Assembly: GCA_037447605.1 (NCBI GenBank)
Contig: CM074810.1
Location: 2,514,880-2,578,879 of the forward strand
DNA: 64,000 nt
Direction: 5' to 3'
Source: Zygnema circumcarinatum SAG 698-1b
Lineage: Eukaryota; Plantae; Zygnematophyceae
Positions 11,946 through 63,819 of the stretch are shown here, one piece after another. How positions within the stretch are numbered: the first letter of the stretch is position 1; each line of letters begins with the position of its first letter. The position numbers and the translations under genes are program-made. The notes beneath the pieces were generated by a model. That model ran no database searches. It was given only the letters and a program-made list of their open reading frames with translations, and was not told the origin of the DNA.

Positions 11946-14423
11946 ATGAAGCTGTTCCGGATATGGCGTTGGTGTTGATCGCCTTGTTCAACGAGGTGGA
12001 CTTGAGAACGCAAGTGTTGGCGGCGGGTCCACTCAGCGTGTAGGCGAAGGCCGTACACTTTGGCTCGGCCTTGCATTTGGCGCAGCACGCCTCCTTAGAC
12101 GTGACAGCTGTCACGGTCTTCAGGTCAAAGCCGCGGTAGCTATAGCCCTGGTCGTAGGTGCAGGTAGTGGTACCCACTGAAAAAAAAAAAAAAACAAACA
12201 AAAATGTTTATTGGTGGGTCTTCCTGACAAGCATTAGGAAGAGGAGGTGCGAAGATAAATGTTAAATTTGTTGAAGTTACGTTTTTTGAAGTCATTTTGA
12301 TTGTCTTTAAGTTAGGTTATTTTTGGGTATCTGTGGTAATATGTTAAGCTTTTTTTTTTTTTTTTAGACGTACCGGCGGAGGTGGCGGAGACCATATTGG
12401 GAGTCGAAACTCTGTTATTGGTCGCGAATTTTAGGTCGCAGTTTTTCGCTCTGTCCCCCGTTGTGAAGTAAGAGAAGGCGACGCATTTTATGGTGGCTGT
12501 GCACCAATAGCAGCAGCTCTCCTTGTTGGGGACATTGGGAAAAGTTGAAATGTTGAACAATGGGTATTCATACCCACTCTCGAAGGTACATGTTCCTGCA
12601 CAAGTTGCAGCAGCCAAGTTTATACATGTTAGAATTCAAAAGCGAAGGCTTAATCGACTCAATGTGTTGGTGCTCATGCCCGGACGGGAGGGAGAGGAGG
12701 GAGGGAGGGAGGGAGGGAGGGAAAGAAAGGGAGGAAGGGAAGGGATGAGGGAAGGAAGGGAGAGAGGGAGGAAGGGAGGGACACAGGGAAGGAGGGAGAG
12801 AGGGAAAGAAGGAAGGAGGGAGGGAAGGGAGGAAGGAAGGGAGGGAAAGAGGGAGGGAAGGAGGGAGAGAGGGAGGGAGGGAAGGGATGGAGGAAAGGCA
12901 GGAAGGTGGGGAGAAAGGGGAGGAAGGGACGGGCACAGGGAGGGAGGGAGAGAGGGAAAGAAGGAAGGAGGGAGGGAAGGAAGAAAGGAGGGAGGGAAAG
13001 AGGGAGGGAGGGAAGGGATGGAGGGAAGGGAGGAAGGGAGGGAGAGAGGGAAGGGACGAAGGGAGGGACGGGAGGGAGGAGGGAGCGAAGGGTGGAGAGA
13101 GGGAGGGAGGGACGGAGGGACGGAGGGAGGGAGCGAGGGAGGGAGGGAGGGAGGGAGGGATGCACAAGAACACCAACATCGCCTGCTGATTGTTTGATGT
13201 GTACCTGTTGCCACGCCGGAGGTGGCTGTTGGGTCCGCCACGGGGTTGTTGATGGCCTTCTTTAGAACGCATTTGTTGGCGTTAACGCCGCTCACAAAGA
13301 AGGTGAATGCACTGCAGCCGGCGGTCTTGCGGCACTCGAGGCAGCACTCGTCCCGGCTGTCAAGGGAGGGGACGGTGGAGAGGTCGTTGCCGGGAAAGTT
13401 GAACCCCGCCTGAAAAGTGCAGCCTGCATTACCCCAATAAAGAAAAAAAGACTTAGTGGGAACTTTAGTCGGAACTTTAGTCGGAACGTAGTAATATAAG
13501 TTGCGATCAGCTCGAGATGAAGCTCTTAAACTGTAAGCTATGATTTGGTTTTACAATGCAGAAAAATCGCAAGATTTGGGACTCCGTAATGAAGAAAGGT
13601 GATTTTTTTGTTGCCTGACTGAAGGCTGGAAAGGATCGAATAAGAAGTTTTGACCTCAAAAAGCAAAAACCTAAAAGACCTAAAAGCTGATGATTGCCAA
13701 AAACCTAAAAAAATGGTAGTCAGTTACTGAGGAAAGCAGCCTCTAAAGCATTTTTCTTACTGGGTATTACTCTTTTCCACTCTTAATAACCTCTCTCTCT
13801 CTCTCTCTCTCTCTCTCTCTCTCTCTCTCTCTCTCTCTCTCTCTCTCTCTCGCCCTCTCTCCCTCTGCTGGCACTTTCCTCTCCCTCTCTTTCTCTCCTA
13901 TCTCTCTGTTACTCGATTTATCCCTCTACCGTCTCTCTTCCCCTCTCCCTCTGCCTCTCTCTATCCTACTCTCACTCTCTCCCTCCATACACTGCGCTAA
14001 AATTGCTTCTAATTTTTGCAGATTTAGGGTCCAAGTATTCGCATTAAGCAACAACCCCCCCTAAGCTTTAGTCATGTCCAGAAGAATCTTTGGAAATTTT
14101 GAACTTTTTTAAAAAACAGGAAACTATTGCTTCGAGAAGAAAGTGGATATTAGACTCCAAAAAAGACTGAACTTTTAGGTCCTTTAAAAACACCAAGGAA
14201 GCTGTTTTTCCTTCACTGCTACCTCTAAAGTAAAACGGTAAGAAAAAAATAAATGAATATAAATAATATATTAGTAATACAGTATAGCACTAAATTACTA
14301 TTTTTATAAAATTAAGACAAGGAAGATAATGGAAACAAAAAAAAAGTTACCTTGTGCGAGCGCCTTCACAACAAGGAGCTGAACAAGTGCCAAGAGGAGG
14401 ATGGAGGAAGCCATGGAAGCCAT
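11946..14423 (-). CDS. Secreted triple PAN/Apple-domain protein, paralog 1
   Basis: Exons: 14423-14351 (73 nt, MASMASSILLLALVQLLVVKALAQ signal peptide), 13423-13205 (domain A, CTFQAGFNFPGNDL...CCLECRKTAGCSAFTF...KCVLKK), 12595-12374 (B, ...CCYWCTATIKCVAFSYF...CDLKF), 12176-11946 (C, CTYDQGYSYRGFDL...CCAKCKAEPKCTAF...CVLKS). All introns are phase 1 GT-AG. The short terminal exon was not fixed. Confidence 0.88.
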
Positions 14424-14770
14424 CTCGCCAACGGAAATTTGTTTAAGGAGAACGGAATTTCTCTGAATATACAAGTCACATGGAACGCCACGTCAGCTCA
14501 AGCAACGCTGTACCGTACCTGCCAGCCGGCACCTTCCGTTAGATTCAACGGCAAACTGAGAATCACAAAAAAATAAAAAAGGCAAACTATCTCACCTTGT
14601 ATTCTTTCGCCTTCTCTCCCCCTCTCTCACTCCCTCTCCCTCTCTCTCCCTTTACCTCTCTCTCTCTCACTCTATATATCTCTCACTCTCTCCCTCTCTC
14701 TCACTCTCTCTCCCACAGGTTTTAGTTCAAGCAGCAGCTGCAGATTGCCGCTTCCCCGCCTTCCCGCGCT

Positions 14771-14777
14771 CTAAATA
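14771..14777 (-). promoter_or_regulatory. TATA-like TATTTAG upstream of the GA-rich 5'UTR of PAN paralog 1
   Basis: Followed on - by a GA-rich leader, a GTGAG donor near 14595 and an AG acceptor near 14463 before the ATG; same layout as paralog 2. Confidence 0.45.
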
Positions 14778-61014: not shown

Positions 61015-62664
61015 GGCTGCCGACCTCCCCCTCCTCCCTCCCTCCTGCTTATGAGAGAGACCAACTGTCACTTTCACTGGCCTTAAGGGGGTCCTCCCTG
61101 AGGGTGTTTTTCAATCCTATACCCAATGGGAGTACGCCACGTGTACAGAATTCTCCACGTGGCGGGGCGCCATTGGTCGATGGGCCAGTGAGGGAAATGG
61201 CGGTGTTGCCGAGTGCCTTCGTTCGAAGTGGACAATGGGCGCACGTGTTGGCCCGCATCCAATCAGAAGTTCCCACGTGTCTACTTTGCTGACATGGTAC
61301 GCTCTGACTGGCCAGTCTATGACCGTTTTTTACGCTCAATGACGTTTCACCCCAACGTGTACTTGTGGCTGACGCCAGTTTTCAAATTCCTGTAACTGTT
61401 TTTAGTTCATAGAAAGGCTGTGGTCCCCGTTCTGTTCCAGTTCACATGTAGCTTAGTTTAGTTTAGTTCAGTTTTACACGTTGCTCGTGATAGCGTGGCG
61501 GCATGTGATGGGTGGCGGCCTCCCCTCGCCTTTTGTCGAGCCATCTTTTTGTGTGCATGTGGCGAGCCACCATTGGATTACGTTCCATACGGTTTGTTCG
61601 CAATGCAGAAAGGCCCTACGAGGCCTAGAGTTGTGGGAGAACAAGAACCATGCGCGCATGCATGCACAACTCTTGTGTCGTCTCCTGCGTCACTTTTCAT
61701 ATCGTCGCATCGGCGATGTTGGCTGCTGCTCATGCATGCATGCTGACGACATCATAAACCATTGTTGACGTCATGACCAAACCACCTAAAAACAGTTTTT
61801 TCCAGGAAATACTCGCTCAATCAGCACAAAACGACAAGCACATTGAGTCAATGCACTACAGACAAAAAAGAATTGTCGTTTTCCCCCCGGACAGCTATAA
61901 GTAACCATTATGACCGTACGACGTAGTCATTTCGACGCCTGGGCGGCTCCGCATGGACCAGGTTACCAATGGCGGGACCGAACTGATGTTGTGACTGAAG
62001 GTAGCTGACGGTAACTGACGGTCTCTGATGTTTCCTCTTTTATGTTGTTAACATGCCAAGTCTCATACGAACCATGTTGTGCGACTTTGGGGATGCAAGC
62101 GCTTGCTGTTGTTCAACATGGCACGCATTGCATTAAGAAAGAAAGCTTGGAACACGTGTGAACAATGCTCAAAGTTACATTTTGGAAGTTCAGAGGACAT
62201 TGAGTGGAGGTGAGAGAAAAAAAATGAATTCTATTACAAGGCACGATTGGACTATGTCGAGATCGAACTCAGCCGAACAACTTTAGTACATGGGGGTGAG
62301 AAGAGCAGCCCTCCTTGGGTCCCTGAGAAATAGGGACTCTCCTTTACACGGCGAAAATCAGATAAATTGATCTTTTATTAAAACGACCAAAAAAAATAAG
62401 GAAAACCTACACTAGGTTTTGTTTGACTTCATGGTTTCCAGAACAAGTGGAGTTTCGTGCTGCTCGATGTGAGGGCCATTTCCGCCTTCCAAAGCGGATG
62501 TTCTGCACATGTAGAGAGAGCCATACAATAAATGAGACGAGTGATGGCGTCCACAGTGATGATGATGTGATGATATACATCATGTGATGTGATGTGATGT
62601 GCCTTTAGAGGCATGACATGGTGGCATCAACCCCCCGATATGGTAGCACCACAATACGACCATG

Positions 62665-63819
62665 TCACTCACATGAGAATCTGACCCTGTCACCTTGGGA
62701 CGGCGAAGCCCGACCTCCCGCAAGCAACACCTGTAGCCAAGCAAATCATGGCGGACGGTGTAAGAGGATACCATCAGGGGAGAGCTTAATAGAGTGAAAC
62801 ATAGGGTCAAAGGGTAAGGATGAGGGGGGCAGGAGGGAGAGAGAAAGAAAGGTAGAGATTTTGGGGGGCAAAGAGGGGAGGGAGAGGGAGAGAGAGGAGG
62901 GAGAGAGAGAGAGAGATGGGGCAAGGTCCCTCACCAGTTACCGTTGAGGAAACAGCGTTCAGGTTTGCAATTTTGTTCACACTGGAGGACTTTAGGATGC
63001 AGGTTTTGGCCTTGGCGCCGCTCATGGCGTATGTGAAGGCGCTGCACTTGGGGGTGGTTTGGCAGGCGGCGCAGCACAGGGCCTTGGAGGGCACGTTGGG
63101 GAGCGACTGCAAGTCGAAGCCGCGGGAGTCGAATCCGTCCTGATATGCGCACACCCCCGCTGTGCATGGACGCACAACATACAATATGGTGATGAGATAT
63201 CGTTCAGAAATCTGCTCCCTCTCTCTCTCTCTCTCTCTCTGTCTCTCTCTCTCTCTCTCTCTCTCTCCCTCTCTCTCTCTCTCCGTCCCTCTCTCTCTCC
63301 GTCCCTCTCTCTCTCTCTCTCTCGCTCCCTCTCTCTTTCTCTCTCTCTTTCTCTCTCTCTCTCTCTCTCTCTCTCTCTCTCAAACGCTCTCCCTCTCTTC
63401 CTCTCTCACTCTCTCTCTCGCTCCCTCTTTATCCCTACCTCCCTCTCTCCTCCCACTCATCCCTCCCGCTATCACCTCCCACACATCCCATCCAAATCAC
63501 TCCTCTTAACCTTGCTGCTTTTGCTTACATTCCTACGAATCGTAGGGCTTCAAAGTTTCCCAATCTCAGAAAATGTTGGGGTTTCCATGGCGCTTACCAG
63601 TTAAAGTTCCTGCCGACAGATTAGGGCTCGGAATGCGGGCAGATACAGCGTACTTGGTCGCGCATGTGAACGCTTTGGGCCCACTTTTGAAGTATGTGAA
63701 GGCGACGCACTTAATAGAAGTGCCGCAAAAGTTGCAGCAGCTTTCCTTGTTCGGAATCTGAGTCTCCTCACTCAAAGTATAGAGGGGATACTCAACATTG
63801 TCTTCAAAAGAGCAAATTC
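62665..63819 (-). CDS. Secreted triple PAN/Apple-domain protein, paralog 5 (3' part; signal and A exons presumably beyond the window)
   Basis: Exons: 63819-63598 (B, CSFEDNVEYPLY...CCNFCGTSIKCVAFTYF...CATKY), 63159-62935 (C, CAYQDGFDSRGFDL...CCAACQTTPKCSAFTY...CILKS) and tentative terminal exon 62693-62665. All are phase 1. Confidence 0.85.

Follow-up and report, generated by a model that had tools for sequence, protein, structure and literature searches.

What kind of protein is encoded by a run of repeated, cysteine-rich exons in a conjugating green alga, and do these exons form working genes? Among the algae, conjugating green algae are most closely related to land plants, and their wall and mucilage proteins are poorly known. 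The exons lie in a stretch of 64,000 nucleotides from Zygnema circumcarinatum SAG 698-1b (GenBank assembly GCA_037447605.1, contig CM074810.1, positions 2,514,880 to 2,578,879 of the forward strand), which is referred to here as the window. A first-pass annotation, made from the sequence alone, described an array of five genes for secreted proteins with three PAN/Apple domains, together with a relic, and proposed that they are an expanding family. Our analysis indicates that the array consists of old paralogs encoding small proteins with a predicted signal peptide, three differentiated PAN/Apple domains (A, B and C) and a short tail with a conserved cysteine. We hold with moderate confidence that these proteins are exported to the wall or mucilage, where they would bind ligands, most likely glycans or glycoproteins, in a multivalent and non-catalytic way and would be coupled by disulfide bonds through the tail cysteine.

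Gene models at the five loci

The six-frame translation of the window was searched with a motif scan and with a home-made hidden Markov model (HMM) built from the matches of that scan. Fifteen PAN-type coding exons were found, each with an expectation value (E) of 1e-23 to 1e-37, and all remaining HMM matches in the window had E >0.07. The exons fall into five loci, g1 to g5, of which four are complete genes and g5 is cut by the window end. Gene g1 (11929..14423, minus strand, 253 residues) has its signal peptide at 14423-14351, A at 13423-13205 (HMM segment 13203-13433), B at 12595-12374 (12375-12602) and C with tail and stop at 12176-11929 (11947-12174). Gene g2 (19580..21830, plus strand, 256 residues) consists of a signal peptide at 19580-19652, A at 19958-20176 (HMM segment 19951-20178), B at 20485-20709 (20478-20708), C at 21048-21275 (21050-21274) and a tail at 21805-21830, and an identical extra C segment was matched at 22858-23082. 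The exons of g3 (26983..29456, plus strand, 257 residues) are the signal peptide at 26983-27055, A at 27474-27692 (HMM segment 27467-27694), B at 28070-28291 (28063-28290), C at 29019-29252 (29024-29245) and the tail at 29431-29456. Those of g4 (39045..41519, minus strand, 264 residues) are the signal peptide at 41519-41468, for which an alternative upstream ATG is possible at 41573, A at 40892-40674 (HMM segment 40672-40896), B at 40254-40036 (40034-40261), C at 39861-39631 (39632-39859) and the tail at 39118-39045. The partial g5 (62690..63819, minus strand) has B at 63819-63598 (HMM segment 63596-63826), C at 63159-62935 (62933-63166) and a tail at 62730-62690, and its A and signal exons must lie past base 64000, outside the window. 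All five loci were found where the first-pass annotation had placed them, except that g4 extends past 39.6 kb to its tail exon. The lengths of the four complete products agree with the architecture proposed there, a signal peptide, A, B, C and a short tail in about 250 residues.

Domain exons start right after an AG, two bases ahead of the first cysteine codon (further upstream in the C exons), and end one base into a codon before a GT, with a length of 219-234 nt. The internal exons are therefore all of phase 1-1, and the splice borders are GT-AG at every site of the spliced models of g1 to g5. The introns contain microsatellite tracts, namely (GGGA)n, (CCCT)n, (AG)n, (GAGAGA)n and (CTCT)n; for example, (CCCT)n occupies 28568-29007 in the g3 B-C intron. 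Each domain is thus a separate exon between microsatellite introns, as had been suggested, and gene callers that are weak or based on open reading frames (ORF) are likely to miss or split such genes.

Each A exon of g1 to g4 is preceded by an ATG exon, which has a phase-1 donor at its end and codes for a hydrophobic, signal-like peptide. These exons were picked by a scan for hydrophobicity and a phase-1 donor, and their starts at 14423, 19580, 26983 and 41519 coincide with the gene starts of the first-pass annotation. The predicted exon length is 73 nt in g1, g2 and g3 and 52 nt in g4. The predicted signal peptides have about 17-24 residues, with an initial methionine, a hydrophobic core and A-x-(Q/H/A), and their Kyte-Doolittle maximum over 10 residues is 2.5-3.0. 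The tails are short and not hydrophobic, and no glycosylphosphatidylinositol-anchor signal was seen in them. The products of g1 to g4 are accordingly predicted to be classical secreted proteins with a cleavable signal peptide.

In all five models, domain C is followed by a tail of 5-24 residues with one conserved cysteine and then a stop. The C exon of g1 reads directly into its tail (...ASCGVQL-stop), whereas in g2 to g5 a phase-1 donor closes the C exon and the tail is encoded by a short last exon. The g3 tail, GSSCGVAL-stop, is similar to that of g1. The g4 tail, GVTCSQ...SPPPSPPAKV-stop, agrees with the tail of P0156 (GVTCSQQ...SPPP), a transcript-derived protein described below, and the g5 tail, GVACGRSG...-stop, is similar to it. 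The tail TCRSTVVK-stop is the least certain piece of the g2 model. A tblastx comparison of the upstream and downstream flanks of the paralogs found no shared tail or signal exons and returned only a redundant g2 block. Tail and signal exons are too short for such similarity, and a rule of phase, acceptor and cysteine was used instead; the tail exons of g2, g3 and g5 were chosen by this rule, guided by the transcript tails. Outside support exists for the tails of g1 and g4 only, and where the g2, g3 and g5 models end is accordingly less certain.

Two other ways of reading the exons were rejected. Read-through of C exons into CT-rich ‘proline-rich’ ORFs (e.g. 20987-21682) is ruled out by repeat periods of 28 and 58, which are not multiples of three, and by the relatives, which stop a few residues past the domain. 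A single giant multi-PAN gene is ruled out by opposite strands, signal exons and stop codons.

The spliced models of g1 to g5 contain no kinase, transmembrane helix, B-lectin or CBM1 domain; in the four complete ones, the signal peptide, three PAN domains and the tail of 5-24 residues before the stop account for the whole 253-264 residues. Since all five models end in a stop after these short tails, no partner domain is predicted to be attached, and its proposed lack is supported.

PAN/Apple fold, relatives and age of the array

The domains belong to the PAN/Apple superfamily by profile, fold and core cysteines. Searches of the exons with Pfam returned PAN models only. PAN_1 (PF00024) and PAN_4 (PF14295) match every exon tested, most of them above the gathering score; g1C reaches 37.3 bits on PAN_1 (cut-off 21.4) and g1A reaches 38.0 bits on PAN_4 (cut-off 27). 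Taken singly, the B exons of g1, g4 and g5 are slightly under the Pfam cut-offs (18.8-23.6 bits), and they align fully with the others. Of the three models, PAN_2, the type found in land-plant receptor kinases, fits these exons least well, with E 5.6e-5 to 0.02 or no match. Each domain carries a pattern of six cysteines, C...CC..C.....C...C.LK, that is found likewise in oomycete CBEL-like proteins, and the core cysteine signature of the superfamily (C-x3-C-x5-C ... C) is present. Columns C5, C30, C34, C40 and C55 are invariant in 14 of 14 exons, and C31 is conserved in 13. Aromatic residues make up 13% of B and 7-8% of A and C; when the window is compared with the transcripts, the conservation of B exceeds that of A and C by a narrow margin only.

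The g1 A exon was modelled by AlphaFold2 from an alignment of 14 exons, and the model has a predicted local distance difference test (pLDDT) score of 90.2. Its strands (5-12, 17-21, 42-46, 54-58 and 65-75) and helix (27-36) form an antiparallel beta-sheet with one helix. The model superposes on the Apple domains of factor XI (FXI) and plasma prekallikrein with a template modelling (TM) score of 0.83, a root mean square deviation of 1.3-1.5 Å and 19-26% identity. Further superpositions were obtained with the Sarcocystis galactose lectin SML-2 (TM score about 0.74), with Eimeria MIC5 and with the N domain of HGF. A sequence search of the PDB with the domain profile found the FXI Apple domain at E 2e-11, and also MIC4, SML-2 and EtMIC5. 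P0005, a full-length relative, was modelled as three Apple domains (pLDDT 72.6), and its best matches were the multi-Apple discs of FXI and prekallikrein.

An exhaustive HMMER profile search of 1.84 billion representative proteins gave 3249 matches at E <=0.001. Small three-domain proteins scoring like members of the family, at about 65 bits per domain, were limited to P0005 (254 residues) and P0006 (233 residues), both without names. These two, together with P0151, P0156 and P0157, all come from contigs of 1.1-2.0 kb that belong only to the seven sequencing runs SRR8128902-08. Three matches, all from the same series, were obtained by word-based searches that used P0005 and a mixed alignment as queries. 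The contigs have an uninterrupted reading frame, untranslated regions, a poly(A)-like end and adapter remnants, and they are therefore spliced transcripts. They show no nucleotide-level similarity to the window, so they apparently derive from another species. The contigs contain no introns, and the encoded proteins have the layout of the window genes: a signal peptide, the domains A, B and C, and a short tail in which there is one cysteine. The three-domain architecture is thus a spliced, expressed product in relatives.

Some of these relatives differ in the tail. P0157 (contigs L005/L006) has a proline-rich tail of about 60 residues past the conserved cysteine, with PPPPPPP and SPSP runs, and P0156 (L007-L009) has one SPPP in the tail after the conserved cysteine. 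In the window, Ser-Pro motifs occur in the g4 tail only, as one SPPP and one SPP, and there are none in g1, g2, g3 and g5. The proline-rich tails in some relatives indicate that in other species the family grades into extensin-like chimeras.

The top scorers that have names are Apple proteins of oomycetes and proteins of an ichthyosporean, a rotifer and a myxobacterium, with far lower per-domain scores, and the 20 top matches checked by name were oomycete, rotifer, ichthyosporean, myxobacterial or without a name. No named streptophyte relative was found in the protein collections; the word-based searches missed even P0151, so that the blank result for Mesotaenium and Closterium is no proof of absence. 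In the papers searched, none was found that describes such triple-PAN secreted proteins in streptophyte algae. As far as these searches reach, the triple-PAN family is real, unannotated and, as the first-pass annotation had supposed, undescribed, and by its sequence matches it appears to be lineage-restricted. The kind of protein, a secreted protein with tandem PAN domains, is well known in other eukaryotes.

Streptophytes are known for PAN domains in another setting. G-type lectin receptor kinases and SLG/EP1-like glycoproteins of land plants are similar to the algal proteins in that a PAN-superfamily domain is part of an extracellular protein. In land plants, however, the domain is of the PAN_2 type and stands with B_lectin and S_locus_glycop, usually with a transmembrane helix and kinase, and the spliced algal proteins have none of these features of S-domain receptor kinases. 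The existence of a secreted family with PAN domains only indicates that a domain mostly kept in S-domain receptor kinases by land plants is also used as a free, shuffled extracellular module.

A tree of 26 domains, taken from the window and from the transcripts, separates A, B and C into one clade each (97-98% support), and transcript domains occur in all three. The domains cluster by position and not by gene, which agrees with the position-specific signatures noted at first pass. In the A clade, g4 is placed together with P0005 and P0156 (support 83/88), as it is in the partly unresolved B and C clades. This grouping indicates that the three-domain order and at least two subfamilies predate the split between the species. 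The synonymous divergence (dS) between window paralogs is 0.6 to >2.5 or too saturated to compute, with all pairs at 0.6 or more. The ratio of nonsynonymous to synonymous divergence (dN/dS) is 0.1-0.4 in all computable pairs except g3A-g4A, where it is 0.65. Saturated dS, low dN/dS and a domain order common to the transcripts point to an array that is old and maintained by purifying selection. The description of the family as expanding is therefore not supported: no pair has a dS below 0.6, most are saturated, and the A-B-C order and at least two subfamilies are already common to transcripts apparently from another species.

It could be argued that the array is in part an artefact, made of assembly duplicates or dead exon relics instead of five working genes. 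Nine gaps lie in the window, and gap-bounded redundant blocks do exist. The sequence at 20858-22655 is bounded exactly by the gaps at 20848-57 and 22656-65, and by self-BLAST it is 99.9% identical (1798 bases, no mismatch, one indel) to 22666..24461 (plus strand), the gap at 22656-65 separating the two copies. The second copy contains an identical g2 C exon at 22856-23083 and tail exon at 23611-23636. Because the block runs from gap to gap and is near-identical, the extra C exon at 22.8 kb is most simply a redundant contig, and not a sixth gene or a relic. A second gap-bounded pair, 46872-47720 and 47731-48575, has 98.7% identity, and the gaps that bound the blocks in both pairs are of 10 N. 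Redundant contigs were apparently left in the scaffold, and copy counts in this assembly need care. The five genes themselves differ by 30-60% at the protein level and their dS is saturated, so they are not assembly duplicates of each other. All 19 exons of the five genes are open, with canonical splice sites and conserved cysteines, and the relatives are transcribed. No PAN coding exon in the window is touched by a gap. The gap at 20848-57 lies within an (AG)n tract of the g2 B-C intron, where it makes the continuity of the intron uncertain and hits no coding base, and those at 30864-73, 47721-30, 48576-85 and 54156-65 are outside the PAN genes, in intergenic sequence or in other genes. An artefactual origin is very improbable overall; for the five genes it is refuted, and only the extra C exon at 22.8 kb is explained by it.

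Possible ligands and the tail cysteine

In the reading that we prefer, the proteins would be exported to the wall or mucilage, and each domain would be a self-contained unit with three disulfides. Three differentiated modules might provide three different binding faces, with glycans or glycoproteins as the most likely ligands. A free tail cysteine could then link the proteins by disulfide bonds to each other or to another wall component, and the SPPP-type tail of the g4 subfamily hints at extensin-like glycosylation in the wall.

Binding of glycans or glycoproteins is favoured over other ligand classes by analogy with CBEL, MIC4 and SML-2. CBEL, which bears PAN/Apple domains, is reported to have Gal/GalNAc lectin activity and to mediate adhesion to cellulosic substrates (PMC3532174). 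MIC4 likewise is a lectin, with galactose as its ligand (PMC6608980). CBEL and CBEL-like proteins of Phytophthora and Pythium are secreted, non-catalytic wall proteins that have in common with the algal proteins repeated PAN/Apple domains and the six-cysteine pattern, in which one cysteine before the domain is followed by CC..C.....C and C.LK. Apple proteins of Pythium oligandrum belong to the best named matches of the domain profile. Unlike the algal proteins, CBEL has a CBM1 domain joined to each PAN/Apple domain; the triple-PAN family has no CBM1 and no space for one, and is set apart by three differentiated domains, always in the order A-B-C, and by a conserved tail cysteine. The per-domain score is about 26 bits for CBEL-like proteins and about 65 bits for the algal transcripts; the oomycete proteins belong to a separate lineage, with no evidence of orthology. 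In apicomplexans, TgMIC4, Sarcocystis SML-2 and Eimeria MIC5 resemble the algal proteins in being secreted and made of tandem Apple domains only, with sequence matches at E 1e-5 to 7e-3 and fold TM scores of 0.64-0.75. SML-2 is a galactose lectin by the title of PDB entry 2yio, and the algal proteins were compared with it by fold and sequence only. The apicomplexan proteins differ in having 2, 6 or 11 domains with neither the A-B-C signature nor the tail cysteine, and they serve the attachment of parasites to host cells.

The structural comparison also leaves room for proteins that bind other proteins and not glycans, such as factors for cell-cell recognition or mating (conjugation), or receptor ligands or decoys. 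The closest structural matches are protein-binding Apple domains, those of FXI and prekallikrein, which bind kininogen peptides, and also HGF NK1. The heavy chain of FXI and plasma prekallikrein, with four Apple domains in a row, is both the best structural match and the best PDB sequence match. However, its Apple domains are fused to a serine protease, a C1-C6 disulfide closes each of them, and the ligands are proteins; the algal domains have instead one boundary cysteine per domain and an extra cysteine in the CC pair. The lectin-type Apple match is nearly as good, as the superposition on SML-2 indicates. A family that appears lineage-restricted, with paralogs that have diverged yet are maintained, is often seen among recognition proteins, and the alga belongs to the conjugating green algae. 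In contrast, dN/dS is well below 1 in almost all pairs, and no diversifying selection is visible at this resolution. We consider a role as protein-binding or signalling factors rather unlikely.

Another alternative is a role in defence, in which the proteins would bind microbial surfaces in the mucilage or inhibit microbial enzymes, like the small cysteine-rich secreted proteins of plants that are encoded in tandem arrays. The array is indeed a tandem one of small, cysteine-rich secreted proteins, and PAN domains occur in plant G-type lectin immune receptors. However, the paralogs are old and under purifying selection and not fast-evolving, and the PAN_2 model of receptor kinases scores worst of the three. 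We consider a role in defence distinctly unlikely.

The tail cysteine, in the reading of wall or mucilage glycan binders, would be the coupling site. A cysteine about 23 residues after the last domain is present in nine of nine sequences (five window genes and four transcript proteins). Of 51 further small PAN proteins returned by the search, no more than five carry a cysteine at this position, two of which are members of the triple-PAN family and one of which is the start of a further domain, and CBEL-like proteins end without an extra cysteine. There is one boundary cysteine per domain, which makes four for three domains if the tail cysteine is included, besides the extra cysteine in the CC pair. 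The products of g1, g2 and g3 have 19 cysteines each. Since by homology the domains are self-contained with three disulfides, the tail cysteine is expected to be unpaired in these proteins. The g4 product has 18, because its A domain carries CT instead of CC; in g4, P0005 and P0156, one cysteine of the A-domain CC pair is lost, which leaves two odd cysteines. FXI dimerises through its odd Cys321, to which the odd tail cysteine of the algal family is a parallel, and this analogy suggests that the tail cysteine couples the proteins by disulfide bonds.

A stronger version of this idea is that the proteins are covalent cross-linkers of the extracellular matrix of zygnematophytes. Three differentiated Apple modules and an odd tail cysteine would allow disulfide dimers or, for g4-type proteins, head-to-tail chains or closed rings, which would tie wall or mucilage glycans or glycoproteins together. 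If true, cross-linking would be a lineage-specific matrix system for adhesion, gliding or conjugation, built on a module spread by exon shuffling that elsewhere is typical of animals and parasites. We regard this version as unlikely.

Several points weigh against the view of the proteins as disulfide-coupled glycan binders of the wall or mucilage. The transcripts come from relatives only, and none of the alga's own proteins is contained in the protein collections that were searched. In g2, g3 and g5 the tail exon is very short and was chosen by rule, with tails supported from outside in g1 and g4 alone, and the signal peptides were called on hydrophobicity. PAN/Apple domains bind proteins as often as sugars. 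The ‘free’ state of the tail cysteine is deduced from counts and homology, and in g4-type proteins, with their even cysteine count, the tail cysteine may pair within the molecule. The triple-PAN family nevertheless offers concrete candidates for adhesion, mucilage organisation or cell-cell recognition, and the conserved tail cysteine is a simple testable handle.

Relic fragments and other features of the window

The relic proposed at first pass amounts at best to about 23 codons at 17152..17229 (plus strand), a fragment similar to the start of a C exon (C.Y..G.DYRGFDMK). It was matched by tblastn with three C-domain queries at E 0.016-0.03, about 0.02. Stops lie on both sides and no CC..C motif follows downstream. 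The match is marginal. A weaker relic-like fragment lies at 36116-36187 (plus strand, E about 0.5). About 150 bases upstream of the first fragment is an interstitial, telomere-like array of a 9-mer at 16929-17007, with 8.8 perfect copies of CCCTAAAAA, which is (TTTTTAGGG)n on the opposite strand. Another interstitial array at 50125-50462 contains about 38 copies of TTAGGG, which is the vertebrate type and not the plant type TTTAGGG, with degenerate 12-mers flanking it.

Other genes are found between and beside the PAN loci. A gene with Root_cap similarity and a GDPH motif lies at 33528-35030 (minus strand), between g3 and g4; the Pfam Root_cap match (E 1.7e-4) is on the end of a long exon, and the product shares 62% identity with a protein of Mesotaenium endlicherianum and 53% with one of Closterium. 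No PAN exon attached to this gene was found at 33.5-35 kb. An exon of a GT37 xyloglucan-fucosyltransferase-like gene is at 51208-52017 (minus strand). Exons of a Mlo family gene are at 55718-56206 and 59722-60144 (both minus strand), and this gene is interrupted by three gaps, at 56748-57, 57883-982 and 59675-84.

Long ORFs over a minisatellite of 21 bp at 4859-7101 (108 copies), a minisatellite of 42/84 bp at 45949-46388 and a GA tract at 1-608 (305 copies) are artefacts of these repeats. An ORF of 293 residues at 7605-8486 (plus strand) is lysine-rich, starts with TTG, has a tandem repeat of 39 bp near its end and gave no Pfam match; it may be a gene for a nuclear basic protein.

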